DNA of 64,000 nt from Macrostomum lignano. Lineage: Eukaryota. Positions 17,421 to 63,669 of the stretch are shown piece by piece. The stretch is taken from contig NIVC01000001.1 in the NCBI GenBank assembly GCA_002269645.1, positions 2,294,001 through 2,358,000 on the forward strand, written 5' to 3'. The notes under the pieces were generated by a model. The model searched no databases. It was not told the DNA's origin and was given only the letters and a program-made list of their open reading frames with translations. Position numbers and translations under genes: made by a program. The first letter of the stretch is position 1. Each line of letters begins with the position of its first letter.

Positions 17421-17975
17421 CGAAGACCAAGGCGTCATAAAAATGCCGATATAAAATAAATATCAACGATTGCAATACAAAGCAAAGGAAATTTGCAGTT
17501 TGTTTGTTTGTTACTCGTCATTTGTTGCATTGCTTTCGAGTCAATTTATTTTTAATACAACTATAAATCTGTACAATACATAGGCAATATAGCAGGAATA
17601 GCAATAAGTTGAGTAATTTAATAAAAGCATCACTAACGTGACTTAATTAAGTAAAGGACAGATATAGGCATTTGCAATGAACACAAGTATTTTTTGAAAT
17701 TATTCATCTAGACAAATTAGTGAAACTGTTTGCGATACAGACAGACACAGACAGGCAGACAGACGACTGCAAATGAAAAGTGCAAATGGTGTTAAGCGGT
17801 ACAAAAGTTTAATTTTTTTCAAAGGCGCATTGAGTAAGAGAAATAAAAGAATATTTACTTAAGTCGCAATTGCTGTATCATATAAGTATGCTCAACTGTC
17901 GGTATTAGTGGCCTGTGCAAGACCTCAATTAATTTAGTTTGAATTTGAAGCCATTATAAAGTCGAACTTTTAATG

Positions 17976-18648
17976 GGAGATAGGACAGGGTGTCAGGCAG
18001 ATAGGGCAGAGTGTCAGGGAGATATGACAGGTTGTCAGGGAGATAGAACAGAGTGTCAGGGAGATATGACAGGGTGTCAGGGAGATAGGACAGGGTGTCA
18101 GGGATATAGAACAGAGTGTCAGGGAGATAGGACAGGGTGTCAGGGAGATAGGACAGGGTGTCAGGGATATAGAACAGAGTGTCAGGGAGATAGGACAGGG
18201 TGTCAGGGAGATAGGACAGGGTGTCAGGGAGATAGGACAGGGTGTCAGGGAGATATGACAGGTTGTCAGGGAGATAGAACAGAGTGTCAGGGAGATATGA
18301 CAGGGTGTCAGGGAGATAGGACAGGGTGTCAGGGATATAGAACAGAGTGTCAGGGAGATAGGACAGGGTGTCAGGGAGATAGGACAGGGTGTCAGGGAGA
18401 TAGAACAGTGTCAGGGAGATAGGACAGGGTGTCAGGGATATAGAACAGAGTGTCAGGGAGATAGAACAGAGTGTCAGGGAGATAGGACAGGGTGTCAGGG
18501 AGATAGGACAGGGTGTCAGGGAGATAGGACAGGGTGTCAGGGAGATAGGACAGGGTGTCAGGGAGATAGAACAGAGTGTCAGGGAGATAGAACAGAGTGT
18601 CAGGGAGATAGGACAGGGTGTCAGGGAGATAGGACAGAGTGTCAGGAA
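17976..18648. repeat. 21-bp minisatellite (AGGGAGATAGGACAGGGTGTC), about 32 copies
   Basis: Direct reading. Confidence 0.95.
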
Positions 18649-23400: not shown

Positions 23401-23569
23401 GTGTTTTTCTGCAAAGCGTCAACCTGCAGAGTGAGGTTGTAAAACAGCTTGAACTCCTCCGGCTTCATGCTGATCACCCGGTCCTGCTTAGTTGTGAGCA
23501 CTATACGACCGTTGGATTCGGCCACGTCTTTTACGCCAGGTAGCATTTGTTTTAAGTGGTCCAGAGATG

Positions 23570-23624
<55 letters not shown>

Positions 23625-23920
23625 TTGCAGTTGCTGTTGTAATTGCTGCTGCTGAAGCAGTTGCTGCTGCTGTTGTTGCTGCAGCTGCTGCTGTTGCGGA
23701 GTCATTGGGGCGGCCAGGAAATGCACCTGCTGGCCTCCGCTGGGAGTCTGGCTGATAAAGGCCTGCGTTGGAGCTGACGCGCTCACCTGCGTATGGAGGA
23801 GGCGGAGGTGAAAGGCAAAATAATGAGGAAAAATAGGTAGGTGGAAAAATAAAGCAACACAAAATTATGGGCAGACAAGTTGACAGACAGACAGCCAGAG
23901 ACTAAAAGAGACTGAAAGCC

Positions 23921-23965
<45 letters not shown>

Positions 23966-23980
23966 AACACAGACAGACCT

Positions 23981-24030
<50 letters not shown>

Positions 24031-24114
24031 AACACAGACAGACAGACCTGACAGACAGACAGACAGACAGATAGACAGACAGAAACACAGACAGACAGAC
24101 CCACAGACAGACCT

Positions 24115-24160
<46 letters not shown>

Positions 24161-24265
24161 AACACAGACAGACAGACCCACAGACAGACAGACAGACAGA
24201 CACACAGACAGACAGACAGACACAGACAGACAGACAGACACAGACAGACAGACAGACAGACAGAC

Positions 24266-24310
<45 letters not shown>

Positions 24311-24390
24311 AACACAGACAGACAGACCCACAGACAGACCTGACAGACACACAGACAGACAGACAGACAGACACAGACAGACAGACAGAC

Positions 24391-24431
<41 letters not shown>

Positions 24432-38983: not shown

Positions 38984-41875
38984 TCCTATATCCTAAAAAT
39001 GAGTTGTTTGTAGCTATGCGATAGATTTCAGAAAAATTGGCTCAACCGATTTTCTTCAAACTTGCACCATTTGATCAGAAATTTTCCTGGCACGGTACAT
39101 GCATTTTGGCTAAGAAATTGCTCAATTTTAAAGGGATTAAATATTCGAAAAACATGCTTTTTTGCAAAGGTCAAGCAGCTATTTCGACCTGAAATGCATT
39201 GTAAAAATGCGATAGAAAAAACTGACTGACTGAATTTCAATTGTGATAAAGATTGCATCACAACAAGTTGAAAACAGTGTCGAAGAAATGCGCACAAGAC
39301 TTGATTAAAATTGCGTAACCATATTGCTAACTTGAATTGAGACTGATACTGGCTGACTGAGAAATTGATTATGTCATAACTTTTTACTCCAATTGACTTG
39401 CTGTAAGAATTGAATTATAAGGGCCACAATTCATAATTTAATTGAAAAAAGAAAGCCCTGATGCGAACAGACTGGAATGCTAATGTAGTGACCTGGGTTC
39501 GAATCTTAGTAGTGCAAAGAGATTTTTTTATTAAAACACCTTAAAAACACAACAAAACTGCTAAACATCAAAGAAGCGCAATTTCAAACATAGAAGAGCC
39601 AACATATCGAACATAAGAGTTACCATGTCAAACATAGAAGAGCCACCATGTCGAACATTAAAGAGCCGCCATGTCAAACATTTAAGAGCCACCATGTCGA
39701 ACATAAAAGAGCCACCATTTCGAACATTAAAGAGCCACCATGTCAAACATTTAAGAGCCACCATGTCAAACATTAAAGAGCCACTTTGTCGAACATTAAA
39801 GAGCCACCATGTCAAACATAAAAAGCCAACATGTCAGACATTAAAAAGCCACCGTATCAAACATAAAAGAGTTACCATGTAGAACAAAAAAGATCCACCA
39901 TGTCGAACATTAAAGAGCCACCATGTCAAACATAAAGAGCCATCATGTCGAACATAACGAGCCACCATGTCAAAAATTTAGGAGCCACCATGTCAAACAT
40001 TTAAGAGCCACCATGTAGAATATTAAAGAGCCACCATGTCGAACATAAAAGAGCCACCATGTAAAATATTAAAGAGCCACCATGTCAAACATTTAAGAGC
40101 CACCATGTCAAACATATATGTGACTTTATGTCAAACATTAAAGAGCCACCATGTCGAACATTAAAGAGTCACCATGTCAAACATTAAAGAGCCACCATGT
40201 CGAACATAAAGAGCCACCATGTCGAACATAAAGAGCCACCATGTCAAACATAACGAGCCACCATGTCAAAAATTTAGGAGCCACCATGTCAAACATTTAA
40301 GAGCCACCATGTAGTATATTAAAGAGCCACCATGTCGAACATAAAAGAGCCACCATGTAAAATATTAAAGAGCCACCATGTCAAACATTTAAGAGCCACC
40401 ATGTCAAACATATATGTGAATTTATGTCAAACATTAAAGAGCCACCATGTTGAACATTAAAGAGCCACCATGTCAAACATTAAAGAGCCACCATGTCGAA
40501 CATTAAAGAGCCACCATGTCCAACATATATGTGACTCCATGTCAAAAATTAAGGAGCCCTCATGTCAAACATAAAAGAGCCGCCATGTCAAACATAAAAG
40601 GACCACCATGTCAAACATTAAAGAGCCACCATGTCGAACATTAAAGAGCCACCATGTCTAAAATTAAAGAGCCACCATGTCGAACATTAAAGAGCCACCA
40701 TGTCGAACATTAAAGAGCCACCATGTCAAACATTAAAGAGCCACCATGTCAAACATTAAAGAACCACCATGTCAAACATTAAAGAGCCACAATGTCCAAC
40801 ATATACGTGACTCCATGTCAGACATTAAAGAGCCATCAAGTCAAACATTAAAGAGCCATCATTGCAGACAGTAAAGTGCCACCAGGTCAACATTAAAGAG
40901 CCACCATGTCAAAAATTAAAGAGCCACCATGTCTAACATTACAGAGCCACCATTTCGAACATTAAAGAGCCACCATGTCTAACTTTAAGGAGCCACCATG
41001 TCAAACATTAAAGAGCCACCATGTCAAACATTAAAGAGCCATCATGTAGAACATTAAAAAGCCACTATGTCAAACAATAAAGAGCCACCATGTCAAAAAA
41101 TAAAGAGCCACCATGTCAAACATAAAAGAGCCATTATGTCGAACATAAAAGAGCGACCATGTCACACATAAAGAACCACCATGTCTAACATAAAAGAGCT
41201 ATACCATGTCAAACATTAAAGAGCCACCATGTCAAACAATAAAGAGCCACCATGTCAAACATAGAAGAGCCACCATGTCAAACATAAAAGAGCCACCATG
41301 TCTAATATTTAAGAGCCACCATGTCAAACATTAAAAAGCCACTTTGTCAAACATAGAAGAGCCACAATGTCAAACATAGAAGAGCCACAACGTCAAACAT
41401 AGAACAGCCACTATGTCAACATAAAAGAGCCACCATGTCAACATAGGGAGCCACCATGTCAAACATTAAAGAGCCACCATGTCAACATAAAAGAGCCACC
41501 ATGTCAAACATTAAAGAGCCACTATGTCAAACATAAAAGATACACAATTTCAAACGTAAAAGTAAGCGAATTTTAAAGGAGCCACTATAATGCTAAGGAA
41601 ATTGTCGCACTAGCTACTTATTGTCCGGTGGATGCTTGCTATCTGGGGGATGCTTACTATTTGGGGGATGCTTGCTATCTGGGGATGCTTGCAATCTGGG
41701 AAATGCTTGCTATCTGGGGGATGCTTGCTGTCTTGGGATGATTTCTTTTTGCATTGCACTTCATTTGAGTATTTTGTGTTTTCTTTGTGAAGGCTTTATT
41801 TGGCTATCTTTTTGTTACTTGTAGAGAACAGAGATTCTATACAGATGTCCCCCAACGGGGGGCGAAGATTGCTAG
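38984..41875 (+). mobile_element. Non-autonomous Helitron, copy 3, with a different satellite cargo
   Basis: TCCTATATCCTAAAAATG start fused to CTAG of copy 2; ends CCCCAACGGGGGGCGAAGATTGCTAG|T; internal satellite 39570-41540. Confidence 0.75.
39570..41540. repeat. 21-22-bp satellite (GAGCCACCATGTCAAACATTAAA) inside Helitron copy 3, about 2 kb
   Basis: Direct reading. Confidence 0.93.
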
Positions 41876-43908: not shown

Positions 43909-46868
43909 TCAAAGTTCAATCATCAGTCGAATCTCTTTCAGCGACATTTCGAATGCAACAGCGTCCCAGTGGACGTAGTCGGTCCCGTTTCTCTCGCCTC
44001 CACTGTAGTAGATCCCATTTGGATTGCAGGTCTCGCAGTAGTTGAACCACCATCCGCTACCACTTCTTACTTTAGCGCAGCAGTAACCAATGCAGTTGGC
44101 GTCCGTTGTCTGAAACTTCATTCCCCTGTGTGCACTGAGCGAGTCTCCAGAAACATTGGAGCTGTTGAGCAGCAGGCTGCCGTACTGCAGGGCGTAGCCA
44201 GTGTCGGGGCCCTCTACGAGGAAGCCACTGTACTCGCAGTGGTAGCTCATGCCGTTGAACCTGACAGCCTCAATTCGCATGGTTCTGCCCACCGGCCGGG
44301 TCAGGGCGTGGATCCAGCGCAGGCCTGCGGTGTCAATAGGTAGTCGGTCGGTATGAGCTGCAAGGGACTCTGGCAGCGATTGAGTTTGTATGAGTGCTCA
44401 GTGACTTCTGCAGTATACGCTCCTTTTCCCAACATAGTTTTGCCTAAGACTGCATGAGAACTAGCAAATTCAAGAAAGCGATTTTGCACAGATACTGCGA
44501 ATCTCTAGCAGCAGCAGCAGCAGCAGCAGTATTGGGAATTAAGAACAGAAGTCAGGGTTCATGCAGTAATTACTGACGTGTACATGTAGCACTGATTTTA
44601 ATCAACTTAATCGATGACTTGTAATCGGCACAAAACTGATCTTTTTGAAGGAATTCTAGCTGTCTTCAAGGCTGTCAGCCTATATCTTGCTGACAAGCTT
44701 CATATAGTTGATCATTGTTCATTAGTTTTGAACTGTTTGAGCATTCACTGATTCAATAAACGACCTATTTTAAAGAAACAGTATTATACCATCACGATCA
44801 CGCACCTATCCAAAAGTTAGCTTCATCACCAAAGCCATTCTCGTACTCGGTCCAGCCTCTCACAAAGTCAACCGAATTGCTCTCGCGCTGCTGAAATATG
44901 TAAAAGTTCCTGCTGCCTCCGATCGCTAGTCGGCTGTAATCTGTAAAACACGGAAAATTTGAAATTGTCAAATTGTTGTTATTTAAATATGATCTTAATG
45001 TACATATGCTGCAAGTTTTGTGTCCGTACTGTAAAGTCTAATTGGTTAGTAATAATAATAATAATAATAAAAGTAACTAATTACGCCTACCCCAATTAGG
45101 GCCAGATGTGCAACCGACAGCTCAGTCGCAGCTATTGCGCGGCGCATCTGAAGGCTGCGTACGGCTGTTCAGTCCAAGAACTGGGGGGTCGCCACACACC
45201 CTCAATTACCCCAGCTAATGCTGGCACCCATTTTACAGCTGAGTGAACTGAAGCAATGCAGAGTTAAGCGTCTTGCTGAAGGATCGGGAATCGAACCTCC
45301 GACCTTCAAGTCGTGAGTCCTACGCTCTAACCACTTAGGCTATATACAGCCCCACGTTGCATGGTTACATTTCCGGATGACCTCTGTTAGCCGTGTAGTT
45401 AGCCACCTGCCCTGCCTGCCGTTAAGCTCGACGGGCCGGCTTGTGAATTCTGATTGGCTAGCGTGGACGCTTGTGCTCTCGGCATAGCATTCCAATTGGC
45501 TCTAGCAGTGTTCGCAGCAGAGCCGTATTGCACCAGCAGAAGCACGGAAGTCATGTGTCTCACTGTTACGTTCGTTCTTTAGGGACAGTCCAGACATTCG
45601 GTCACGAAGGACTGTGCGTTCGTGCGACCCCAGTCGTCGGCATTCCCGCATCACGTGTAGTGCGACAGTTTGCTGACAAACAGTAACGACGGAAGTGTTA
45701 CTTCCAATGGACAAAGCAAGGAACATTCAAGTAACACAACAACATTCTGCCAAAATACTCGCAGCTTTGATAATCTTGCTCAACTGCTCTTTCCTCGCAA
45801 TGGAAGGACTCCTACGACGTACTCGAAGTTAATGCGCAGCTTTAGTGTGTGTGATATACTTTACTAAAAGGCTTTTGATGACGGCTATGATCTTTCCAAT
45901 GACTTACATAAAAGCATTATAAATGATCGATGTCATTCATTCAAATCCATTAGTTTCTATGGAGACAGCTGATATTGCAATCGATCTATCACTAACGAGT
46001 ACTCTCAGTCAATCCATCTGATGAAGCATCGACACCATCAACTTAAAACGATCTCCGATTATCCGGCAGAGAAAGCTGCAGAACTGGGCAACTCAAGGAG
46101 TTCTCAGTACAGTTTGGCTGGAGCAAACCTTTTACCATTAGGTTTCTACCTGAAACTGATCGCCAACTACAGGGCTTATAGCTAAGCAGTTTGCTCTACA
46201 TGAAATTCAACCGTGCTTAAACAATGGGGGGTTTCGATAAGCTCCCGTTGAGCTTCAGGTCCTGACGAATAACTGCATGAGTGGTCGGAACGTCATTTGG
46301 TATTCTAACATCCAACTGATATCGTTACTATCGGCACCAAAAATATGAGATCTCATTGATCCATAAGACTTAAGTCTCAGACTTAAGACTTAGCTCAACG
46401 CTCAGCTATGAATGACTCAAGCACGCTCCCGCACTCACCAATCCTCAGCATCGCGCACTCTCCAGCTGAAACCGTGAAGCTGAGCGCCTCCGAGTCCATC
46501 ACCAGCTTGCAGGCTCCAGTGTGAGACAACTTGGCCAGCCTGCAGAGGGGATTCAGCGAGCACTGCCGACTACAGATGAAGGCTGCGGAAGCAAGAGCGG
46601 CCGGCATCGATGAGGCATTGCAGCTGCTCCGGTCGAGAGGGAGGAATCGGCTGCCGCAGTCTGCAGGGTTCGGGGCAATCCGTATTTGTTATAATAAAGC
46701 GAATACTGAAGACTTCTATGCCTCATTTTATAGTTTTATTCAACCTATAGTTATAAATACGCAGAATACTGCTAGGAATCACTTTTACTTGCTATTTGGG
46801 GTACTGAAAGCGCTCAAAAAGTGTTGAAGCTGAAACAGAAGACACAGAAGTGTTCGGATATTCTTCAT
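43909..46868 (-). CDS. Secreted PAN/apple-like + fibrinogen C-terminal (FReD) protein, copy 1, 282 aa; exons 46868-46793, 46660-46439, 44940-44806, 44324-43909
   Basis: Exon sizes 76/222/135/416, all phase 1 and matching the other copies; exon 3 DYSRLAIGGSRNFYIFQQRESNSVDFVRGWTEYENGFGDEANFWIG; exon 4 HRGMKFQTTD..GWWFNYC..CNPNGIY; exon 1 (MKNIRTLLCLLFQLQHFLSAFSTPN) requires a non-canonical GC donor and is less certain. Confidence 0.78.
45051..45353 (-). mobile_element. tRNA-derived SINE with CORE-like central domain and (TTA)n tail, in intron 2 of FReD copy 1
   Basis: Minus strand: GGGGCTGTATA-TAGCCTAAGTGG (A box)...GGTTCGATTCC (B box), then CTTAACTCTGCATTGCTTCAGTTCACTCAGCTGTAAAATGGG resembling the CORE/MIR-type motif; tail at 45051-45070. 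Confidence 0.75.
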
Positions 46869-47239
46869 GTTTGCTGCAGTTTGTTTTTGCATTAATTTAG
46901 AGCAGTGATGACTCAAGTGAAGAAACATTTGCGGGACCTACGTGGTGGTTTTATCAGCGCAAATTTGCGACAGTAGCTAAACTCTCATTGGCTGCAAGCA
47001 ACTGACGCCATACTCGTAGTACATGTACTTGTATGCTCATATTTCTGACTTTCTAATGCGTGATATTCTTTGTAGAGGACGTAACAGTGGAGGTTCAACG
47101 TCGGGACGGATTTATAGAATAATCCAAACCTTTTGGTGACTAACATACAGACCATACGCTCCTACCATGTTGGCTCAATGAGCAGCTTACAGAAAGAATC
47201 CGTAACAGCGCCGAAAGTTTGCATGAGCAGTGTTTCGCT

Positions 47240-47445
47240 CTTTGACACCTGTAGACTTAGCTCTTTGATACCTGTAGACTTAGCTCTTTGACACCTGTAG
47301 ACTTAGCTCTTTGTCACCTGTAGACTTAGCTCTTTGATACCTGTAGACTTAGCTCTTTGACACCTGTAGACTTAGCTCTTTAGCACCTGTAGACTTAGCT
47401 CTTTGACACCTGTAGACTTAGCTCTTTGACACCTGTAGACTTAGA
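47240..47445. repeat. 23-bp minisatellite (TTTGACACCTGTAGACTTAGCTC), about 9 copies, between the divergent FReD genes
   Basis: Direct reading. Confidence 0.92.
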
Positions 47446-48327
47446 GCTGTCCGCATATGCTTCTGACTCCTTTAAAAAATTCCAAACCTTCTCATTCAAG
47501 GGTACTCCAAGCAATGATTCTGGCTTACGCTCGTAATGCATCAATTAAGCAACTTTTCTTGTTACCATGGTCTCTGCGGCTTAACCCCAGCCAAAAACCC
47601 AGCGAGATCTGACCAGAATCTGCAATTTACTCTCGTAGTAAGAGTTTGATAAGCTTTAAGCCGTCACTGAAAGCTTTACTGAACTTATGAGCTACGAATA
47701 TATTTTTTCGCATAATATTTTATACAAAATATACTTTCCAAGGAGACATATAAGTAGAATGTAGTGCGGATGTAAATTAGCGCTCGAAAGTCGCAAGTAT
47801 CGATACACTCGTGTCATTTGCCAGCTTCCGTGGCTGCGCTAAGCAACATCAGTTTCATTTCTCAGAAGCTAAACAGAAACCGAATATTGCAAACCTACAG
47901 CCATCATCAAGTTAAAACTCCATCACTCTCCCATCGTGCAGTTTTGCAATGAACGAAAGGTGAAAAACATTGCAGAAACTTTGAAGGCGCCAGGAGTGAG
48001 GCTTGTGTGCAGATTTCACGGAAAATGATCAGCAGCTTTTCTCGATGCAGCATCGCTCCCATCATTGCAGACAGAATTCCATCCCTGAGAACTGCAGGCT
48101 ACATGTCGCCATTAATGAGGATTTTGACTAATTGGCATTTTTAGCTTATGTGGGTGAAACATTTCTCGTAAAGCAGATACTCAAAGATGTTTGCTCATAA
48201 TTTGCAGAGGATAAAAATTTATAAAAATCCACCAGTCGCACACATGCGGCAGGATTCGCGCTCCTAAAATCGTCGAACAACCAACAATTATAAGAAACTA
48301 CATATAATATTAATAAACATTAGCTTG

Positions 48328-50510
48328 ATGGTTCGACTAGGATTGTTAACACTCTGTTTATTCATCTGCATCTGCGTGCGATCGGAGCAATCGCACACAT
48401 TGCGAAATGGTGAGTCAAGCAGAGAAGACACTGGGGACTGCAGAGAAGACACTGGGGACTGCAGAGAAGACACAGGGGATTGCAGAGAAGACACTGGGGA
48501 CTGCAGAGAAGACACTGGGGATTGCAGAGAAGACACTGGGGACTGCAGAGAAGACACTGGGGACTGCAGAGAAGACACTGGGGATTGCAGAGAAGACACT
48601 GGGGATTGCAGAGAAGACACTGAGGACTGCAGAAAAGACACAGGGGACTGCAGAGAAGACACTGGGGATGACAGAGAAGACACTGGGGATTGCAGAGAAG
48701 ACACTGGGGATTGCAGAGAAGACACTGGGGATGACAGAGAAGACACTGGGGACTGCAGAGAAGACACTGGGGACTGCAGAGAAGACACTGGGGATTGCAG
48801 AGAAGACACTGGGGATTGCAGAGAAGACACTGGGGATTGCAGAGAAGACACTGGGGACTGCATAGAAGACACTGGGGATTGCAGAGAAGACACTGGGGAT
48901 GACAGAGAAGACACTGGGGATTGCAGAGAAGACACTGGGGATTGCAGAGAAGACACTGGGGATGACAGAGAAGACACTGGGGACTGCAGAGAAGACACTG
49001 GGGACTGCAGAGAAGACACTGGGGATTGCAGAGAAGACACTGGGGATTGCAGAGAAGACACTGGGGATTGCAGAGAAGACACTGGGGACTGCAGAGAAGA
49101 CACTGGGGACTGCAGAGAAGACACTGGGGATTGCAGAGAAGACACAGGGGATTGCAGAGAAGACACTGGGGATGACAGAGAAGACACTGGGGATGACAGA
49201 GAAGACACTGGGGATGACAGAGAAGACACTGGGGATTGCAGAGAAGACACTGGGGATTGCAGAGAAGATACTGGGGATGGCAGAGAAGACACTGGGGATT
49301 GCAGAGAAGACACTGGGGATTGCAGAGAAGACACTGGGGATTGCAGAGAAGATACTGGGGATGGCAGAGAAGACACTGGGGATTGCAGAGAAGACACTGG
49401 GGATTGCAGAGAAGACACTGGGGATTGCAGAGAAGATACTGGGGACTGCAGAGAAGACACAGGGGATTGCAGAAAAAAACTTGTGATTGCGGAGTCACTT
49501 GAGATCAAAACTGAACGTCCCGAACCCTGCAGACTGCGGCAGTCGATTCCTCCCTCTTGACCGGAGCAGCTGCGATGCCTCATCGATGCCGGCCGCTCTT
49601 GCTTCCGCAGCCTTCATCTGTAGTCGGCAGTGCTCGCTGAATCCCCTCTGCAGGCTGGCCAAGTTGTCTCACACTGGAGCCTGCAAGCTGGTGATGGACT
49701 CGGAGGCGCTCAGCTTCACGGTATCAGCTGGAGAGTGCGCGATGCTCAGGATCGGTGAGTACTTGAGTCAGAACAGACTGAACGAGTGATGGTCGAATGC
49801 TTCATTGTCTGAATTTTGCTATTCTACTTAAAGTAACCAGTACATAAAATCTCAAATGCATTGCAGACTACAACCGCCTGGCGATCCGCGGTCACCGCAA
49901 GTTCTTCGTCATCCAACAGCGCAAAAGCGACTCCGTTGACTTCGTCAGAGGCTGGACCGACTACGTAAACGGCTTCGGAAATGAGGACAACTTTTGGACA
50001 GGTATGAAGCTATAGAAGTCATTGAGTCATAAACTCAATCGCTGTCAGAGTCCCTTTGCAGCTCATACCGATCGACTGCCCATTGACACCGCAGGACTGC
50101 GCTGGATCCACGCCCTGACCCGGCCGGTGGGCAGAACCATGCGAATGGAGGCTGTCAGGTTCAACGGCATGAGCTACCACTGCGAGTACAGTGGCTTCCT
50201 CGTGGAGGGCCCCGACACTGGCTACGCCCTGCAGTACGGCAGCCTGCTGCTCAGCAGCTCCAATGTTTCTGGAGACTCGCTCAAAGTGCACAGGGGAATG
50301 AAGTTTCAGACAACGGACGCCAACTGCAATGGTGACTGCTGCGCTAAAGTAAGAAGTGGTAGCGGATGGTGGTTCAACTACTGCGAGACCTGCAATCCAA
50401 ATGGGATCTACTACAGTGGAGGCGAGAGACGCGAAAACGACTACGTCCACTGGGACGCTGTTGCATTTGAAATGTCGCTGAAAGAGATTCGACTGATGAT
50501 AGAACTGTAA
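48328..50510 (+). CDS. Secreted PAN/apple-like + FReD protein, copy 2, 284 aa; exons 48328-48409, 49533-49754, 49867-50001, 50095-50510
   Basis: Signal peptide MVRLGLLTLCLFICICVRS; GT-AG phase-1 introns; exon 2 has the C-x3-C-x5-C-x10-C PAN-like core; exon 3 FFVIQQRKSDSVDFVRGWTDYVNGFGNEDNFWTG is the classic FBG motif; exon 4 completes the domain. Confidence 0.85.
48418..49475. repeat. 21-bp minisatellite (GCAGAGAAGACACTGGGGACT), about 50 copies, filling intron 1 of FReD copy 2
   Basis: Direct reading. Confidence 0.95.
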
Positions 50511-52779
50511 CTCGATAACCAATATTGAACTTATTGGCAACTTAGAATCGAAAATTCACAATTAGATACTCAACAAGCAGGCTGCAAAATTGAGTTCAAT
50601 TTGACATTGTTTACGATGCCAAATTTTGACACGCGTTTTTAAAAGACTCAAATGGTCTTATCAAGCTCCGATTGAACCCAGCTTCTCCGCTCTGAAGCCA
50701 TTTTGATTGAAATAAAATGTTAACTACGAAATTGGCCAGTGAGCATCAATAACAAATCAGGCAAACCTGTAATTTTTTCCTCACTAGATTCTGAACTCGA
50801 TTGCATGTACGAATGTAGAGCCCCGAGATGAAAAAAACACTTATTAAAAATCTGCAAATTTCTGTATGCAGATTTTCTGATGAGTCTATGCATGAGACTA
50901 TATTGCATGAGTCTATTTTTGTGTGCGAGTCCAAAACACTACATGTACATATGTAATGGCCCAGCACCTCCAGGGTACTTTGGCAGAGCTACAGGTATTC
51001 TGTCCGCTCGATTTATCATACTCCGCATGGTGACACTAACATGTATTTATGGATAATATTCAAACTGGAACTGCATGCTAAATTAAGCAAATGTATTAAA
51101 AGCAGAATCAAATACAAGTAGAGCCTGTGGTGTTTGATCAACTAATGCACCAAGCTATCCCAATAGACAATGCTGAAGTCATAAAAATACATTCAAATAC
51201 GAATAGACTCTATAGCTAGCCTTGAAGGTAAACAAGAGCTTCCTGACTCACTCCATGAAAAAAACGGTTTAAAAAGTGACACAAAAATTGGGAAACGGTG
51301 TGGGCTTTCTACAATTTATGAAGATCATAAACGAATTCCTGGCACACGCTTAGTGCCATAGACAAACAGCAAAAAAGCTTTCAGCGGGGCTTGAGTCGTA
51401 GAAAAGCAAGCAAAAAGATAAGAAGGAAGCAAAACATATTGTAAACTTTGATCTAGAAAGCTTGTGTTTTGCAAACGAACGTGTCTGCTAGGGACGTCGC
51501 CACGGATTTGATGGTGGGGGTGGGGGGGACGAAGCCAAGAATTCTACATGTACATGACAAAATTCCTACATTGCATTATTTTCAGAATCGGTATTGTCAG
51601 CGCTCATTTTGGCGCCGCATGCACAGCTATTTTTTGTCGCTCTGAAGCAAAATTATCGATTTCTATAACGGGTCACAAGATGGGGTGGGGGGACAACGCT
51701 TATTTACTGGGAATCTAACTGGAAAGAAGGACTTCTAAACAGATACATGCAAAAGGTTCCTCGGGTTCCAATTGCGGCTTCAATGGTTAACTTCAGTGAC
51801 TGACATTCAATGTTTTTTTATTACATGTACATGTAAGTAATTAGAATTCGGATAACTATCATGACATTTATTTGCGTAGTGGTGCATCAAATTAAGCTTT
51901 TCACTAAGAACTACTCAAAAACTTGAGTTGATCAAGTCCTTGCTGTTGACGTTGGCGTTGGCGTTGGCGTTCCTTGCTGTTCACATGCTATATGCTTGCG
52001 CTAACGTTTTTTTCAGTTTGTTTTTCGACGAGCCGTATTCAAAAGTACATGAAAACTTCAGCTCTATCGGACCATAGACAATTCGTCTTCAAATTGCATT
52101 TCATTTGTTTAGATTTCCTATTTGAACTCCTTGGGAAGCGAAAGATCGCTTTCATCGTCCAACATTATCTTCTCCAAAGAAGATTCACTTGTATTCGCCA
52201 GCCTTGAATCAGGGATCTAATAGCGGGATTAAATAAGGTGATTATCGCGAACCGGTGGCGTGAAATCCGCGTGCTTTCTAAGGTTCCGTGCGACAACAAA
52301 CAAGACGTCTTAGGAGACTTTTTCGCTTGAGCAGCTCAGGGCGGAGCTAGAACTGCTCTCCGGTGGAGTTCTGGATTGAGAGCATTGTTATGAAGTTTTA
52401 TACGATGCATAAACTTGACTCTGGTCTCGCTGATTTTATTTCCTCTACTTCAGTATACGGTGGACTAAGAAACTTCTCAAAATATGAATTCTATTTCAAC
52501 AAAGATAGACCAAAACAACAAGGAACTGCGAAAAAAATCTGCGCATAAAGTAACAAGAACTGATCATCCAGGCGTTTAGCAAGGCCTGAACTCTACATGT
52601 ACTGCAGCAGTTTGTGTCTAATGACCGGTTCGCCTAGCCGGCTTGCACGGTGTGGGCTAACCGGCGTTTGCGATTGGCTGGGAGGGGGTTGCTTGACTCC
52701 ACCCCTGGGGGGTGGGTGTGTGGCGTTGGGGTGGGTGGCGCTGTGCCGCTGTTCTCGCGGTGTAACTCATGGATTCCGC

Positions 52780-54380
52780 ATAACTAACAAAGCACGCAGT
52801 GATCCCCAGCCAAACATTGAACTGGAAAACTATTATTCCTTGAAGGCCAACATTAACCAGGCCGATTTACAGATCCAGAAAGAAGTTCTGTGCGGTCGGT
52901 ATCGCCGCTGGCATCAAGCCACAAATTGTCAGTGCCTTGAGAGCCATTCCTAAGCCTGGATTCGCCTCAGTGCGACTCATTCACGATTGCAGCGGGCCCG
53001 AGGGACTCGCAGTTAACGACTACTACTCGATGCCTTCAAAGTTCCGTTTGACATCCGCTACGAACTTCAGCAGAAGACTGCGTCCTGGCTCTTACATGTG
53101 TAAGGTTGACCTTAGCCAAGCCTACCGTTCGTGCGGGATCCACCCTGATGATCAGATGCTCGCTGGCATCAAGTGCTTGCCTCCTGATAGCCGCGAACCA
53201 GTCTACCTCATAGACACCAGGCTTCCGTTCGGAGCAGCGGCTTCCGTCTACTGTTTCCAAAAGCTGAGCTCTGCCATCAGACTCATGATGGTTTCTATAA
53301 CACGGAGGCCTACATTGATGATTTTGCCTTCTGCGGTTCCTTGACTGAATGCAGGGACTTCTATTCGGAGCTCAAGAGTCTCATTGTGCGCCTCGGTTTT
53401 GAGATCAACGAAGGGAAATGTGTGCCACCGATTCAAGTGCATGGTTTTCTTGGGAATCAGATTCGACTCTGTGGCTGGAACGATGTCGCTACCGCCTGAA
53501 AGATTGCCTGGCGAAGCTTAACGGCGAAGCCGAGGCTTTCCAAGCGGATGCTGCGGAGAGTGATAGGCAAACTGAACTGGGCTGCGCAGGTTGTACCTCA
53601 CGGGAGGCCTTTCCTGAGGGACCTCGTTAACGCTGCCGAGTCGCTGAAACGCCTGAGTCATCGAATCAAGATGAACACTCCACTGCACAGCTGCTTGCTC
53701 TGGTGAAGCCTTGCGCTGGAAAGGCGTCGACCATCGAGGCAGATGCTTGCGGCCTAGGAGGTACTGCTATTCTCCAAGATGCGAATGGTTGCCGGGACTG
53801 GCTCTACTTCAACTGGTCAGCTGATGCTGAGGCTGAATACGAAAATCTTCCTATTAATTACATGGAGGCTGTGACCGTCCTTTTCTCGGTAATCTTCTAG
53901 GGTAGCCAGCTTTTTGGCTATCGCATTGACGTTTTCTGCGACGAAGCTGCCTGAAGCAGCGAAGGGACCTGACAGCAAGTGTCATCCGGCCTGGCTCTGA
54001 GCCTGAGGCACAGCAAAACCAACCAGTTCGGAGCCCGGGTGCACCGCGTGCTGCTGCCGAAACTGTCCGGTGGCCACCCACTCTGCCCGACGGAAGCCAT
54101 GATGCCACACCTTCGTGTTAATGGCGTCTCAGCTCCGTCCACCCCGCTCTTCTCAGTGTCAAGCGGCTCAAAGCGGGTCAACCTGTCAGCTTCTAACTTC
54201 GTGCGCTACCCCCGAAATTCCCTCCGCTGCGCTGGACTTCAAGGCTCAGGAGTGCTGTACTCAGCGCACAGCCTGCAGCGGGGCGGCGCTACGTGGTGCC
54301 TGCAGCTGGGCTGGCCGAAGATGAGATCAAGGCTGTCAGTGGCTGGCGCAGCGACGCGGTTCGGTGCTACCTACTGTAGA
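52780..54380 (+). mobile_element. Decayed tyrosine-recombinase retrotransposon (DIRS order, Ngaro-like): RT, RNase H and YR remnants
   Basis: RT motifs KVDLSQAYR, DTRLPFG and a frameshifted YIDDF (53311); RNase H EADACGLGG...LPINYMEA; YR SKTNQFG..LCP..HSLQRGGAT and a frameshifted IKAVSGWRSDAVRCYL; multiple frameshifts; element ends not defined. Confidence 0.8.
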
Positions 54381-55578
54381 GAGCGAAGTCGAGAGAGAGA
54401 GTGAGAGAGAGAGATTTATGCGTTATGTGTAGCCGAAAAAGCCTCAATTCAATATAGGCTCTGTGCGATCGATTTGTATATTTAGCAGCGACCCTGAAGC
54501 TGAAAATTCGTACACTAAAAACAGAAAATCAATCATATTGGATGTACATCGCATATGCACACCAGGAGTAAAAACAAATATCATGCCAGCCCTAGGCAGC
54601 AGGCGCCTACACCTACCTGGGAGTGACTTATCTTTCCGAGCTGCCAAGAAGATGGCTCAGGCGCTTCAGCGGCTTTGCTAACTGGGCCACTTCGTGGTTT
54701 TTTCGCTAATTTTCTTATGCGCCCTCAGCTAATTTTCTTTCAAAACATTTTCCTTGTCGGTTTGCTTTGCTTTTACCTTTCTTGCTTGCCTTTGTAATGT
54801 TTTATTTCCTTTTCTTAACATTCGTGAACCTTCGTGCTCGGTGTTTTTCACTTCGTTCTCGTTTTTTTGCTGGTCTTTGTGTTTGGCATTGGGCATCGTT
54901 TGCGCCACCTGTAGTTTCACCAAGCGGTTTTCGTTGTTGCCTCCCTTTTATACTGGTCACTGGTGTCACTGGTGCATATTTTCAATAATTTGTGAAAGAT
55001 TTATTTGTCAAAAGGCGGTCTATTCATGTTTGTGTCGGAATAAACATATTGAAAGGCCAGGTCAATAGCAAATTCAAGTGGAACATTAGTGAATAGAGAT
55101 TCGACATCAAAGCTGACCAAATTATGGGTGACATTCGGCTCGATTGTCTTTGAAGTAGTGACTGAATTGCTTAATGGAATAAGGCAATATGGGCTTCACG
55201 GCCGACATGCGTAGCCTAGTTCAAAGTTTTATGACCGATCTCAGCTGTGAAACAGATGTTGGTATGAGTGGAATTGATCAAATCCAGGAAATTTAGATGC
55301 ATTTGATGGAACGGCATGGTATAAAGCGATATGGGCTTTACGGACGACATGCGTAGCCCAGGCGTTGAACCAGCATAGGGTCTCGAAGCGCCCATATGGC
55401 TGGTAGCCAATCAATAACTACCGCTCATAATTCAACCAATCAGATACAAGATTACTGCTACAAAATCTCCCATGCGATGCTGCAATTAAAAACTTTCTTG
55501 CTTCCGTAGACTTTGAAAACTTTATCAAAAAGTAGTCAAGATTTCATGTTTCCTACCATTTCGATTAACTATTTTCTG

Positions 55579-56756
55579 ATGAAAAACCGCTTGCTGATCA
55601 TTTCCACGCTTCTGAGCGTTGGCGCAATGACTAATGGTAAGAATTTACAACTTGCAAAATTATACTGCAAAGAAATTTACTGGTTTTACATGGACATGCA
55701 TTGTTAAAAAGTCGCTGGGCATTGCAGCGTCACTTGAAATCAAAACTGAACGTCCCGAACCCTGCAGACTGCGGCAGCCGATTCCTCCCTCTCGACCGGA
55801 GCAGCTGCGATGCCTCATCGATGCCGGCCGCTCTTGCTTCCGCAGCCTTCATCTGTAGTCGGCAGTGCTCGCTGAATCCCCTCTGCAGGCTGGCCAAGTT
55901 GTCTCACACTGGAGCCTGCAAGCTGGTGATGGACTCGGAGGCGCTCAGCTTCACGGTTTCAGCTGGAGAGTGCGCGATGCTCAGGATCGGTGAGTACTTG
56001 AGTCAGAACAGACTGAACGAGGGATTTTCGAATGTTCCATTGTCTGAACTCTGCCCTTCTACTTAAAGTAACCAATACATAAAGTCTCAAATGCATTGCA
56101 GACTACAACCGCCTGGCGATCCGCGGTCACCGCAAGTTCTTCGTCATCCAACAGCGCAAGAGCGACTCCGTTGACTTCGTCAGAGGCTGGACCGACTACG
56201 TGAACGGCTTCGGAAATGAGGACAACTTTTGGACAGGTATGAGCATTAAGCTGCAGAAGTCACGGAGTGCACTCATACAAACTCAATCACTGCCAGAGTC
56301 ATTGCAGCTCATACCGACCGACTGTCCATTGACACCGCAGGCCTGCGCTGGATCCACGGCCTGACCCGACCGGTGGGCAGAACCATGCGAATGGAGGCTG
56401 TCAGGTTCAACGGCATGAGCTACCACTGCGAGTACAGTGGCTTCCTCGTAGAGGGCCCCGACACTGGCTACGCCCTGCAGTACGACAGCCTGCTGCTCAA
56501 CAGCTCCAATGTTTCTGGAGACTCGCTCAAAGTGCACAGGGGAATGAAGTTTCAGACAACGGATGCTAACTGCAATGGTGACTGCTGCGCTAAAATAAGA
56601 AGTGGTAGCGGATGGTGGTTCAACTACTGCGAGACCTGCAATCCAAATGGGATCTACTACAGTGGAGGCGAGAGAAACGGGACCGACTACGTCCACTGGG
56701 ACGCTGTTGCAGTTGCAATGTCGCTGAAAGAGATTCGTCTGATGATAGAACTGTGA
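55579..56756 (+). CDS. Secreted PAN/apple-like + FReD protein, copy 3, 276 aa; exons 55579-55636, 55768-55989, 56102-56236, 56341-56756
   Basis: Signal-like MKNRLLIISTLLSVGAMTN; exon sizes 58/222/135/416; GT-AG phase-1 introns; same FBG motifs as copy 2. Confidence 0.85.
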
Positions 56757-58191: not shown

Positions 58192-59894
58192 CAACAACAA
58201 CAACAAAATACGCTGTCAAGATGGCAAAAGTCAGCGTCACAGGGCGCGCTTCATGGATTGGGCGCGAACAAAGGCCGCGCAACCAGCAGTGTCCGGGGCG
58301 CCGGCGTCAGCCAGCAGACAGTCGACATAACGCCGAGTTCGCGCTTGACCTCGCCGGTAGGGTGCCTGCAGCGTGAGCAGCAGCACCTCCTGCACCGGCT
58401 GTGGGCAGTACGACTCGGCGCGGATGAGATGGCCTGCGAGCTGGAGTCGCCGACGGCGCAGTAGATCACTTGGACGTGGCAGGCCAGCGCGGCGATAGAG
58501 TGCCACGTTGGTGACTCGCTCGACGCCGATGTTGAAGGCGGCGCGCAGCAGGCCAGCGTGCGCCGCATCGACTTGCTGTTCGAGTGAGTCCGTCAGCGTC
58601 CAGGTCTCGGCGTTGTACAGCAGGACGGTCTCGATTACCGTCTGGAACAGCGCCGCCCTTTGGCGGTCCGGTAGGGCCTCGGACTGCAGGACTGCCCTCA
58701 CAGAATGAAAGGCAGTTTTTTTAGTGTCGTAAAGTGTTTTTAGACCCGTAAAGACGTTCTCTTACTGCGAAGACTCAATTTATTGCATGATAAATGCCGC
58801 TACCTCCTCGTGGTCAGAGTGGAGAGCCGCGCTTAACTGCTGCGGCGGCCAAATGCGGCAGGACCAAGCGAGGGCAGCGGAGCGCCCGTCGGCGTGTTGA
58901 GCGCCGGCGTGAGCGGAACCGACGAGGCCGGCTGCGTGGCGCCGCCCGTCAAGCTGCCGCGCGGGTCCACTCGGATCCTCCGGGTGGCGCCGGGGACCGT
59001 GAGGCTCAACTGCATCGAGCCCAAGCTGTACCACAGGGCATGCTTCGGGTCGGGACGCTGAACTGCCGCACTCTCAAGGCTGCTTGGCGTAGAGGGGTAC
59101 TGGCGAAGCTGGCGTACGACCTGAGCTGCGACATCATCTCGCTGCAGGAGGTGTCTATCAAGGCCGACCCGGGACTTCATTGTGAGGACTTGGGCGCCGG
59201 GTGGACCCTCTACTATACTTCTGCGGACCAGCGAGGCCGTGGAGGAGTTGGAGCGCTGATCGGGCCGAGGCTGCAGCAGAGCTGTCGCTGCGTCTCTCTG
59301 TCCCCCCGGTTGCTTCGGATCGACGTCCGGCTCCGCGGTCGGAATGCTCGCCTGTTCTGCGCGTACGCGCCCCTTGCCACACGCCCTGACGAGGCTCAAG
59401 AGTTTTTCGAGCAGCTCTCAGTGCAGGTAGAGGCGACGGCGCAGCGTGACACAGCGGTCGTCCTCGGAGACCTGAACGCAGTCCTGCGTAGGTCCGAGAG
59501 GTCGCTGTTCGTGACGCCACGCGGGAACAACAACACCGAGGCACTGGAGGACTTCCTGGAGAGGCAGGACATGGTGTCGGCTAACACCCGTGTCCGCAAG
59601 CCACTGAGCGGTCTCGCAACCTTAGTGGGCTGCAAGCGGAGGCGACGGAACGCGCGTGGCAGGAACGCAACCCGGAGACAAGCACAGCTCGACCACGTGC
59701 TCGTGCGTTTCCGTGAGCGTCGTCGCGCCGTCAACTGCCGCACCATCACGCCGCTGGCTCTGCGGTCCGATCACCGGCTCCTCATCTGCGACCTCAACCT
59801 TCGCGATCCGCTCTACCGTCCGCCGAAGCGGCCACCGCGGCGCTACTACCACGCGCTCAGAGCCACCGATACGCAGCGTTGCTTTGCTAGCGCC
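58192..59894 (-). mobile_element. RTE-clade LINE insertion with 5' inversion: sense 3' end on minus (58192-58701) plus inverted endonuclease segment on plus (about 58800-59894)
   Basis: Minus ORF ETVLLYNAETWTLT..RRLQLAGHLIR is an RTE RT C-terminal motif, followed by a (TTG)n tail; plus ORF has APE motifs GTLNCRTL, SLQEV, GRGGVG, VLGDLNA, QLDHVLV, SDHRLL; 11-bp TSD TTACATTGCAA at 58181-58191 and 59895-59905. Confidence 0.8.
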
Positions 59895-59961
59895 TTACAT
59901 TGCAATAATGCAAAGTACAAGTACATGTGTACATATCAAGGACTATGTGGGTAGTATAGGC

Positions 59962-61394: not shown

Positions 61395-63669
61395 GCTTGC
61401 TGCAACGGCTACGAAGGCGAAGCCGCCGAGCCCAAAGATCGGCTCCAAGCCTATCAAGCTGATGAACCAGGTGATTTAGAAGAACTGCTCTCAAAGAAGT
61501 TGCTATCCCCACCCAGCTTTTCCACTTTTCCTTCGTTTTTAGTTACGTTAGATCTATACCCTTCGGAAGTAAAAATAATTTGTTAAAAATAACGACTCCA
61601 GACTCGGCTGAGCAGCGCCAGCAGCCACAGCAATTCGATCAGACCCGGCACATCGCTGGCAGCTACCAGGCTTTGCTGAAGCGGCCCAAACAGCGGCTGC
61701 AGCGGAACTACCTGTCAATCAACAGGGAGGCGGCCAGGCTGGGCTATGCTTCCCTGCGCCAGGCCAGCGACTTCCGGGCTCTGCGCGGCGGCGCCTCCGG
61801 CCCCAGCTGCCCGCCTTCGGCCAATGGGGACTCCAACTTGTCGGCTGACGACGAGCTTCAGGCTCCGGCGGCTTCGAGGCAGCAGCAGATGACGAGACAG
61901 CTGCCCGTGCCAATGACCTACGGGGTCAGGACCCAGTGAGTCTTCACTTTGCTCACTTTTAGCTTGCCCCTGCTTTGGTGCCCTTCTGATTTTGGTCAGG
62001 GAGATTTTGGCCAGGGGTGATTTTGGTCAGGGTGATTTTGGTCAGGGGTGATTTTGGTCAGGGTGATTTTGGTCAGGGTGATTTTGGTCAAGGTGATTTG
62101 GTCAGGGTGATTTTGGTCAAGGTGATTTTGGTCAAGGTGATTTTGGTCAGGGTGATTTTGGTCAAGGTGATTTTGGTCAGGGTGATTTTGGTCAAGGTGA
62201 TTTGGTCAGGGTGATTTTGGTCAAGGTGATTTTGGTCAGGGTGATTTTGGTCAGGGTGATTTTGGTCAGAGTGATTTTGGTCAGGGTGATTTTGGTCAGG
62301 GTGATTTTGGTCAGGGTGATTTTGGTCAGGGTGATTTTGTTGACGGGTGATTTTGGTCAGGGTGATTTTGGTCAGGGTGATTTTGGTCAGGGTGATTTTG
62401 GTCAGGGTGATTTTGGTCAGGGTGATTTTGTTGACGGGTGATTTTGGTCAGGGTGATTTTGGTCAGAGTGATTTTTGTCGGCGATTTTTGTCAGGGTGAT
62501 TTTGGCCAGGGTGATTTTGGTCAGGGTGATTTTGGTCAGGAGTGATTTTGGTCAGGGTGATTTTAACCAGGGGTGATTTTATGTCAGGGTTGATTTTGGT
62601 CAGGGTGATTTTGGTCAAGGTGATTTTAACCAGGGGTGATTTTATGTCAGGGTGATTTTGGTCAGGGTGATTTTGGTCAGGGTGATTTTGGTCAGGGTGA
62701 TTTTGGTCAGGGTGATTTTGGCCAGGGGTGATTTTATGTCAGGGTGATTTTGGTCATAGGTGATTTTGGTCTGTGGTGATTTCGGTCAGGAGTGATTTCG
62801 GTCAGGAGTTACATGACTTTATGTCGGGGGTGATATTTGGTCGGATAATTATTTCTGCTAAATTTTAACTAAAGTTAACAAGAAACAAAGAAATCGTAAA
62901 CTTGGAAGTTACAAGAACAGAAAACGAACTTCCTTTCATCAAACTCCACTTTTCCAAACCCCGACAAGGTCTGGCGACCCGCTGCACGAGCTTCTGTCGA
63001 ACCGCTACTTCACCGAGTGGCAGCAGAGCCGTTTCGACCGACACAGCGTCAAGAGCGCCACCGACGCTGTCAGAGTGAGTCAGAAATTCCTATCGCCACC
63101 TTGGGCTGCTGAATTCGGTTGTTGACGTTCAATTATTGACTATTTGATTTGTTGCCCGAACTTTTAGTCGTTTCAGGGATTGTCCTTTTGCTTTATAATT
63201 TAGCTGACTGGCGTATGGTGCAAATGATTGATGCAATCAATCAATTTCTTTCACCATTCTCACACTCATTCTACACTACTGCTAGTAAAAGTATCATAAA
63301 ATTACACTCGGATTTTAAAACTTTATTTGTTAAACTTCAACTCACCTACTGCAAGTAGAAAAATGCGTTTTTCTACTATTTTTGTACCAAAAAACCTTCC
63401 AGCCGGACTTCACGCAGCCGACCATGACTCGGGCGGCGATGCTGCGCCAGCGTCTGCTGCCTGTGGACGCCTCTTACCCGTCGGCACTGCAGCCGCAGGC
63501 GCACCAGTTGCCATGGAGACTGGCTCGATTCGAACGGTCAGCCAGGCCGCAGCTGGACACGTTCCGCAGCGAGAGAGCGCGCCAGGCGGCCGTGGCAGCG
63601 TGGCGGGCCGAGCAGAGCCACCGTCAGGGCCCCGTGGGGCTGGGAATCTACGCTGCCAGTAGGCGCTAG
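61395..63669 (+). CDS. CFAP77: Cilia- and flagella-associated protein 77; exons 61395-61470, 61602-61935, 62969-63074, 63403-63669 (possible ATG-only first exon 60100-60102)
   Basis: Motifs RNYLSINREAARLG, LPVPMTYGVR, PLHELLSNRY, TRAAMLR, WRLARF and LDTFRSERARQAAVAAWRAEQSHRQGPVGLGIY match CFAP77 as I recall it (RNYIAMNRGAVKAG, LPPNMTFGIR, PFFDLLQHRY, TRSSQLR, LDTFPTEADRQRA...RQGTLRMGNY); junction phases 1, 2, 0 are consistent. Confidence 0.82.
61990..62810. repeat. 14-16-bp intronic minisatellite (GGTGATTTTGGTCAG)
   Basis: Direct reading; inside CFAP77 intron 61936-62968. Confidence 0.95.

Follow-up and report, generated by a model that had tools for sequence, protein, structure and literature searches.

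Three fibrinogen-related genes with a divergent, candidate apple/PAN module in the flatworm Macrostomum lignano

Few recognition families of invertebrates are as expanded as the fibrinogen-related proteins (FReDs), and almost nothing has been published on them for free-living flatworms. In molluscs, the fibrinogen (FBG) domain occurs together with a PAN/Apple domain in some FReDs of Lottia gigantea, in four Crassostrea gigas genes and in FREP1 of Biomphalaria glabrata (Lu et al. 2020, PMC7588048). Here we describe three paralogous genes in a 64,000-nucleotide stretch of the Macrostomum lignano genome (contig NIVC01000001.1, positions 2,294,001 to 2,358,000 of the forward strand; hereafter ‘the window’), each of which encodes a hydrophobic N-terminal segment, a 74-residue cysteine-rich module and an FBG domain that retains the B and P subdomains and is devoid of the A subdomain. 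The explanation that we favour, and hold to be probable, is a lineage-specific cluster of three functional genes for secreted FReDs, in which a divergent apple/PAN module precedes the A-less FBG domain.

Akin to the flatworm proteins, the mollusc PAN/Apple FReDs are secreted invertebrate proteins with a PAN/apple-type module on the N-terminal side of the FBG domain, and they are likewise functionally uncharacterised. They differ in that domain databases identify their modules but not that of the flatworm, and in that the flatworm module, from the phylum Platyhelminthes, abuts the FBG domain with no A subdomain in between; BgFREP1 moreover carries an immunoglobulin superfamily (IgSF) domain and an interceding region. 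The same order of modules is found in P0100, a 361-residue protein from ENA assembly ERZ17095334 that was retrieved in a profile search with the FBG relatives and that has a PAN_1 domain (E 5.8e-7) before a complete Fibrinogen_C domain (profile positions 4-220 of 221). P0100 shares with the flatworm proteins a closely similar cysteine frame (C-x32-C-x3-C-x5-C-x11-C-x18-C, also with one extra cysteine) and an FBG domain that is 38% identical to theirs; as opposed to them, it retains the A subdomain (VYCDMETDGGGWTV), a DKDND calcium motif and a ficolin-like C-x-x-SNLNG region, and the N-terminal modules are only marginally similar in sequence. Because the combination of PAN/Apple and FBG is reported in molluscs (PMC7588048) and present in P0100, it is not an undescribed architecture, although none of its bearers has been functionally characterised; a preliminary description of the window had proposed an undescribed immune or recognition family. 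The cluster is thus a lineage-specific variant of a very large known superfamily, not a new kind of protein or system; what differs here is the phylum, a module too divergent for profile recognition, the loss of the A subdomain and a remodelled Ca/S1 site. No paper in the literature searched links fibrinogen-related proteins to flatworm genes, and a Macrostomum bioadhesion paper names fibrinogen only in an unrelated context.

Two further groups serve for comparison. In FIBCD1, calcium is held by Asp393, Asp395 and the carbonyls of Ser397 and Asn399, and the acetyl pocket S1 is formed by Tyr405, His415, Tyr431, Ala432 and Trp443 beside the Cys401-Cys414 disulfide; the equivalent of Trp443 is a tyrosine in tachylectin-5A (TL5A) and in L- and M-ficolin (PMC3908420). 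The B and P subdomains of ficolins, TL5A and FIBCD1 (PDB 2j5z, 1jc9 and 4m7f) are homologous to those of the flatworm proteins (E 1e-19 to 1e-11), which have kept the P-domain disulfide and the NG-x-Y motif but have no collagen-like or other oligomerisation region, no A subdomain and neither the calcium ligands nor the pocket residues; three additional cysteines occupy the binding loops. With the snail FREPs (IgSF plus FBG) the cluster has in common multiple clustered FReD genes, signs of gene conversion and diversification of paralogues, but the flatworm proteins have neither an IgSF domain nor a coiled-coil interceding region.

Gene models and the FBG domain

Searching the window with the first gene model (tblastn) revealed exactly three homologous sets of exons, which form three four-exon genes at 43909-46868 (minus strand), 48328-50510 (plus strand) and 55579-56756 (plus strand). 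Copies 1 and 2 stand head-to-head, their ATGs (46868 and 48328) being 1459 bp apart, and copy 3 lies in tandem to copy 2, 5 kb downstream. The preliminary description had placed three genes at 43909-56756, the first two head-to-head 1.46 kb apart and the third in tandem, and this layout stands: the stop of copy 1 is at 43909 and the stop codon of copy 3 ends at 56756. The splice sites were inspected base by base. All introns are GT..AG introns in phase 1 with donors that are mostly GTGAGT, GTAAGA or GTATGA, the reading frame is intact in each of the three copies, and the predicted proteins comprise 278 (copy 1), 284 (copy 2) and 276 (copy 3) residues, about 255 of which would make up the mature chain. 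The elements of the three genes are as follows.

46805..46868, minus strand: copy 1 exon 1 (MKNIRTLLCLLFQLQHFLSAF), tentative signal peptide; hydrophobic, ATG-initiated, phase-1 GT donor
46439..46660, minus strand: copy 1 exon 2, 74-codon cysteine-rich apple/PAN-like module; phase 1-1, splice sites cag/AC and G/gtgagt
44806..44940, minus strand: copy 1 exon 3, first part of the FBG B subdomain (DYSRLAIGGSRNFYIFQQRESNSVDFVRGWTEYENGFGDEANFWI)
43909..44324, minus strand: copy 1 exon 4, remaining FBG domain (B and P subdomains) and stop codon; in-frame alternative acceptor at 44357
48328..48409, plus strand: copy 2 exon 1 (MVRLGLLTLCLFICICVRSEQSHTLRN), predicted signal peptide; strong hydrophobic core, phase-1 GTGAGT donor
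48419..49494, no strand assigned: 21-bp minisatellite, 51 copies, filling copy 2 intron 1 (Tandem Repeats Finder, 93% matches)
49533..49754, plus strand: copy 2 exon 2, apple/PAN-like module
49867..50001, plus strand: copy 2 exon 3
50095..50510, plus strand: copy 2 exon 4 and stop codon; alternative in-frame acceptor at 50062
55579..55636, plus strand: copy 3 exon 1 (MKNRLLIISTLLSVGAMTN), predicted signal peptide; upstream in-frame ATG at 55546
55768..55989, plus strand: copy 3 exon 2, apple/PAN-like module
56102..56236, plus strand: copy 3 exon 3
56341..56756, plus strand: copy 3 exon 4 and stop codon; alternative in-frame acceptor at 56308
44325-44357 (minus strand), 50062-50094 (plus strand) and 56308-56340 (plus strand): alternative extension of exon 4 in copies 1, 2 and 3, from an in-frame 3' splice site

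Secretion of all three proteins is likely, because in every exon 1 a hydrophobic stretch comes after a short basic N-terminus; signal peptides were judged from hydrophobicity, without a dedicated predictor. In copy 1, no other hydrophobic segment between exon 2 and copy 2 both starts with an ATG and ends in a phase-1 GT donor. The signal peptides announced earlier hold up to the extent that each copy has such an N-terminal exon, but the first exons of the three copies share no homology, and the donor of copy 1 is weak. The open reading frame (ORF) of copy 2 exon 1 could also be read on through the minisatellite, as (REDTGDC)n; we rejected this as coding sequence, since each of the six frames through the repeat is open and exon 1 ends before it at a strong GTGAGT donor.

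At the other end of the genes, a second in-frame acceptor (ttgcag/CTCATACC) common to all three copies lies 33 nt upstream of exon 4. Its use would add AHTDRL[S/P]IDTA between FWT and GLRWIH, inside the FBG domain, whereas the downstream acceptor yields the canonical FBG spacing FW-x-G-L-x-x-I-H. The UniRef model A0A1I8JB80 employs the upstream acceptor, and three of the four variable sites in the additional stretch are third-codon positions, a bias that is not significant. Public gene models for these FReDs are truncated, as the UniRef entry begins in exon 3. P0001 shows 88% identity to copy 3 in the best BLASTP local alignment (93% over aligned columns) and matches none of the three copies exactly, which means that there are additional paralogues or alleles.

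Membership in the FBG family is clear. Scores for Pfam Fibrinogen_C (PF00147), which has a cutoff of 22 bits, are 101.9 and 106.2 bits (E 6e-29 and 3e-30), the match in copy 3 (E 6e-29) spanning protein residues 106-273, and 68 FBG chains of the PDB are found at E<=1e-3, with sequence matches of E 1e-19 to 1e-11 to fibrinogen-420, ficolins 1-3, FIBCD1, MFAP4, tenascins and angiopoietins. The domain, earlier described as complete, is incomplete and consists of the B and P subdomains without the A subdomain, because the Fibrinogen_C match is limited to profile positions 43-217/218 of 221. A custom hidden Markov model (HMM) of 88 canonical FBG domains, used with every filter disabled, likewise gives an alignment confined to positions 51-218 of 222, starting at ‘tvfqrRqdgsvdF’. 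In the PDB matches, too, roughly the first 45-50 residues of each crystallised FBG domain are left unaligned. Neither Pfam nor the unfiltered custom FBG HMM found the A subdomain with its disulfide and its CDM..GGGW motif, and introns 2 and 3 of copies 2 and 3, at 93-112 nt, leave no room for a hidden A-subdomain exon. The 276-284-residue proteins contain no PF01391 match and no G-X-Y run that would denote a collagen-like region; no Ig family matched any copy in Pfam, and a coiled-coil region was likewise not found.

Could exon 2 itself be a grossly expanded, divergent A subdomain instead of a separate module? MAFFT pairs GECAMLR-IDYNRLAIRGHR with EDCQDAFN-QGYVKSGVYPIKP of a canonical FBG protein, which puts the last cysteine of exon 2 (in GEC) opposite the first one of canonical FBG domains, and exon 2 opens with D/N-C, as many FBG domains do. 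The unfiltered profile searches, however, show no similarity upstream of position 51, the CDM..GGGW motif and the partner cysteine are absent, and a module of 74 residues and seven cysteines contrasts with the ~45 residues and two cysteines of an A subdomain. We consider this origin of exon 2 extremely unlikely, the least credible of the readings weighed here.

All three copies are under purifying selection, with a ratio of non-synonymous to synonymous substitution rates (dN/dS) of 0.21-0.25 for every pair (Nei-Gojobori, exons 2-4). The ratio in exon 2 is 0-0.16, and its differing codons are synonymous or non-synonymous in proportions of 6:1 (copies 1 and 2), 3:1 (copies 1 and 3) and 3:0 (copies 2 and 3); the module of copy 1 is one residue apart from those of copies 2 and 3, nucleotide differences being mostly synonymous. 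Exon 2, which is missing from the public gene models, is clearly coding. These values bear on the proposal that one or more of the copies are pseudogenes in a repeat-rich region, for which one may cite the weak exon 1 donor, long introns and divergent exon 3 of copy 1, the 1.1-kb minisatellite inside intron 1 of copy 2 and the retroelement debris between copies 2 and 3. Yet none of the three copies has a stop or a frameshift, all splice sites other than the exon 1 donor of copy 1 are canonical, dN/dS is ~0.2 in every pair, and even in the divergent exon 3 of copy 1 a dN of 0.16 stands against saturated dS. Decay of any of the three genes is, in our judgement, very improbable.

Binding loops and variation among the copies

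The FBG binding site was mapped by HMMER sequence alignments onto FIBCD1, with flatworm residues given in the numbering of copy 3:

FIBCD1 Asp393 (calcium): Asn215
FIBCD1 Asp395 (calcium): lost in a 2-residue deletion
FIBCD1 Tyr405 (S1): Arg225
FIBCD1 His415 (S1): Glu236
FIBCD1 Tyr431 (S1): Gly252 (Glu in copy 2)
FIBCD1 Ala432 (S1): Thr253 (Asn in copy 2)
FIBCD1 Trp443 (S1): Met265

The alignments thus suggest that the flatworm proteins have not conserved the lectin site that is the hallmark of ficolin-type FReDs, and a ficolin-like lectin function is not supported, because both acidic calcium ligands and all five residues of the acetyl pocket appear substituted or deleted. The motifs FQTTDANC, NC[N/I]G[D/Y]CCAK and YCETCNPNG are present in the sequence, so the reduced calcium loop and the extra cysteines reported previously are confirmed. 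C221 and C235 align with Cys401 and Cys414 of FIBCD1, and are by this alignment predicted to pair as the P-subdomain disulfide, whereas C216, C220 and C238 are three extra cysteines in the binding loops.

The preliminary description had also inferred lectins, and of this only the family membership endures. It is conceivable that the proteins are nonetheless classical Ca-dependent acetyl- or carbohydrate-binding immune lectins in which neighbouring residues compensate for the substituted ones: they clearly belong to the FBG family, Asp213, Asn215 and backbone carbonyls could still bind calcium, the NPNG-x-Y motif and the P-domain disulfide are retained, and clustered, diversifying paralogues are typical of immune recognition genes. 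Against this stand the change or deletion of five of five S1 pocket residues and of both acidic calcium ligands of FIBCD1, TL5A and the ficolins, together with the lack of a collagen, coiled-coil or IgSF region. We regard such compensation as unlikely; an immune lectin role is possible, but site conservation does not point to it. FBG domains also mediate protein-protein recognition, as in angiopoietins, tenascins and FGL1. For the flatworm proteins a role in extracellular recognition or adhesion is likely, and the ligand is probably not the acetyl group bound by ficolins, TL5A and FIBCD1.

The copies themselves differ unevenly along their length. Between copy 1 and copies 2 and 3, dS is 0.04-0.10 in exons 2 and 4, and the likeness around exon 4 continues across the whole of the short intron 3; in exon 3, by contrast, synonymous sites are saturated (dS>2, dN 0.16) and the protein of copy 1 is only 70% identical to those of copies 2 and 3. 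Because exon 3 is saturated while exons 2 and 4 and intron 3 have stayed similar, copy 1 is a mosaic, which implies gene conversion or recombination among members of the family. In exon 4, seven of the 14 residues that vary between copies sit among the 23 positions aligned with binding loops (hypergeometric P 0.002, for a set of sites defined post hoc), a distribution that fits diversification of the paralogues at a putative binding surface.

The cysteine-rich module of exon 2

Exon 2 is 222 nt long (74 codons, symmetrical phase 1-1) and has cysteines at positions 2, 14, 30, 34, 40, 51 and 69; the 74-residue exon with C-x3-C-x5-C-x10-C of the preliminary description is therefore real, with seven cysteines in all. 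Six of them (positions 2, 30, 34, 40, 51 and 69) conform to the PAN-type framework, i.e. a C-x3-C-x5-C-x(9-11)-C core with terminal cysteines, and give the frame C-x27-C-x3-C-x5-C-x10-C-x17-C, which leaves one extra cysteine. In microneme antigen L2 (2yil), the solved apple domains read C-x3-C-x5-C-x11-C and C-x3-C-x5-C-x9-C, and both 2yil and exon 2 have a proline at the second residue ahead of the third cysteine. Of the 126 proteins retrieved, P0100 alone has the core motif, within its PAN_1 domain. In shuffles of exon 2, the core motif arises by chance in 3.6% and the six-cysteine frame in 0.3% of cases, for ranges of the frame that we chose after seeing the data.

Structure prediction provided additional, qualified support for this interpretation. 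An AlphaFold2 (AF2) model of the domain alone, computed for copy 3 (predicted local distance difference test, pLDDT, 63.7; predicted template modelling score, pTM, 0.49), places a helix at residues 20-35 that carries the C-x3-C pair (C29, C33), followed by three strands; the two strands next to the helix in sequence start at C39 and C50. In PAN domains, two disulfides tie an alpha-helix to the antiparallel sheet on which it packs, an arrangement with which this order of secondary structure in exon 2 is compatible. A full-length single-sequence AlphaFold model (pLDDT 34.5) was discarded, its Foldseek matches being meaningless.

Several results weigh against a PAN/apple module and, more broadly, against our reading of the cluster. 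(i) Exon 2 matches no Pfam family at E<=10, the PAN families PF00024, PF14295 and their relatives included (given the HMMER filters, this shows only that E exceeds ~0.1-0.3), has no PDB sequence match at E<=10, and has no true match among 1.84 billion representative proteins in an exhaustive phmmer search. (ii) Its alignment with the PAN region of P0100 is in register but marginal (E 0.015 by BLASTP, P 0.022 by hhalign). (iii) Foldseek, run with the medium-confidence AF2 domain model, gave a best E of 1.6 and no PAN/apple structure among the matches shown. (iv) The ranges of the shuffle test and the set of loop sites were both fixed post hoc. (v) The mapping of the binding site crosses a 2-residue gap and was made without a confident three-dimensional model. 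(vi) The exon 1 donor of copy 1 (GTACCC) is weak, and A0A1I8JB80, the only public relative, is a partial automatic model that starts in exon 3 and lacks exons 1-2. Two phmmer matches of exon 2 were ankyrin-repeat proteins with summed weak repeats, which we rejected as artefacts, and a scan of bacterial and archaeal genome contigs, a collection not relevant to an animal gene, found nothing.

How much the silence of the sequence searches means can be gauged from P0100, the bona fide PAN_1 domain of which reaches only E 0.08 against the apple domains of the PDB; the negative sequence searches of exon 2 therefore carry little weight. The strongest competitor is that the module is an orphan cysteine-rich domain of this lineage, with a C-x3-C-x5-C spacing that is convergent or coincidental and with the remainder of our explanation unchanged. 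It draws on the lack of Pfam (E<=10) and PDB sequence matches, on an exhaustive search that gave ankyrin-repeat artefacts alone, on the failure of Foldseek to find a PAN structure and on the 3.6% of shuffles that recreate the core motif. Three features, however, match the PAN_1-FBG protein and a solved apple domain, namely the six-cysteine frame, the helix-then-strands order and the P-x-C ahead of framework cysteine three, and the AF2 model that lacks a PAN match is of medium confidence only. An orphan domain is accordingly possible, though clearly the lesser prospect, and with moderate confidence we take the module to be a very divergent homologue of PAN/apple domains, on the strength of its cysteine pattern and modelled order of secondary structure. 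The PAN/apple assignment made earlier is thereby upheld in its cysteine framework and lacks statistical support for homology (Pfam, PDB, phmmer, Foldseek); the AlphaFold check then suggested for exon 2 gave a PAN-compatible order of secondary structure, but at a pLDDT of 63.7 and with no PAN match in Foldseek.

With a lineage-specific cluster of functional FReD genes as our preferred explanation, the parts may be assembled as follows. Signal peptide, 74-residue module and FBG B/P subdomains would yield a small secreted FReD in which the apple-like module sits where the A subdomain would be. The binding surface on the B and P subdomains would be held by disulfides instead of the canonical calcium site, and its predicted loops would hold most of the differences among the paralogues, which gene conversion keeps similar in exons 2 and 4. 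A mature chain with 13 cysteines, an odd number, would leave one free for covalent dimerisation, and the dimer could take over from the collagen or coiled-coil regions by which other FReDs oligomerise; both the stapling of the loops and the dimerisation are inferred from the cysteine content.

A second M. lignano UniRef protein, A0A1I8FGP2 (P0008), which is a messy model, has a PAN-like ‘DCALKCEQPIVKFCSAFAF’ (residues ~250-330) upstream of a degenerate FBG domain. Because this PAN-like motif precedes FBG, the combination may represent a larger macrostomid family. A bolder version of the idea, a macrostomid-specific FReD subfamily in which an apple-like module replaces the A subdomain and extra disulfides replace the calcium site, independent of calcium, of new ligand specificity and diversified by gene conversion, seems to us quite unlikely as a whole; if true, it would be the flatworm counterpart of the recognition repertoire of snail FREPs. 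An FBG domain that works without A subdomain, calcium ligands and acetyl pocket would show the fold to tolerate more structural change than is now known, and Macrostomum, a transgenic model, would gain a small and tractable cluster of recognition genes. The interest of the locus is mainly for flatworm biologists and for structural biologists of the FBG domain.

Surroundings of the cluster

The window is characterised by short GT..AG introns and by unusually dense arrays of 15-24-bp minisatellites, many of at least 50 copies (2200-2900, 3580-4280, 9660-10420, 14560-15250, 16630-17480, 17970-18420, 40003-41562, 47237-47444 and 61987-62806), each of which gives rise, in more than one frame, to long ORFs that are spurious. 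Between copies 2 and 3, positions 52937-54404 contain frameshifted retroelement remnants with a weak RVT_1 match (E 0.0012, below threshold); an ORF further downstream in this segment, for which Pfam gives no match, resembles a tyrosine recombinase on visual inspection (HSLQRGGAT) and may belong to a DIRS-like element. On the far side of copy 3, a LINE-like element (58237-59954) has a 386-residue ORF with an Exo_endo_phos (APE) endonuclease domain (E 3.9e-9) and a further ORF on the opposite strand without a Pfam match.

Other coding candidates lie at a distance from the FReD genes. Long Gln-rich ORFs at 21584-25002 (minus strand), interleaved with CLSV-type minisatellites, show a weak match to the GLTSCR1 region (E 1e-4, below threshold). 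ORF segments at 13844-14344 and 15380-15784 (both plus strand) resemble exons of an IgSF membrane protein, the latter with an I-set match (E 1.6e-5) ahead of a stretch that is hydrophobic and transmembrane-like. An uninterrupted ORF of 884 residues at 6097-8751 (minus strand), in a block of 58-68% GC, encodes a NACHT/STAND NTPase domain (E 1.7e-7); it may be an NLR-like gene and lies ~35 kb away from the FReD cluster.

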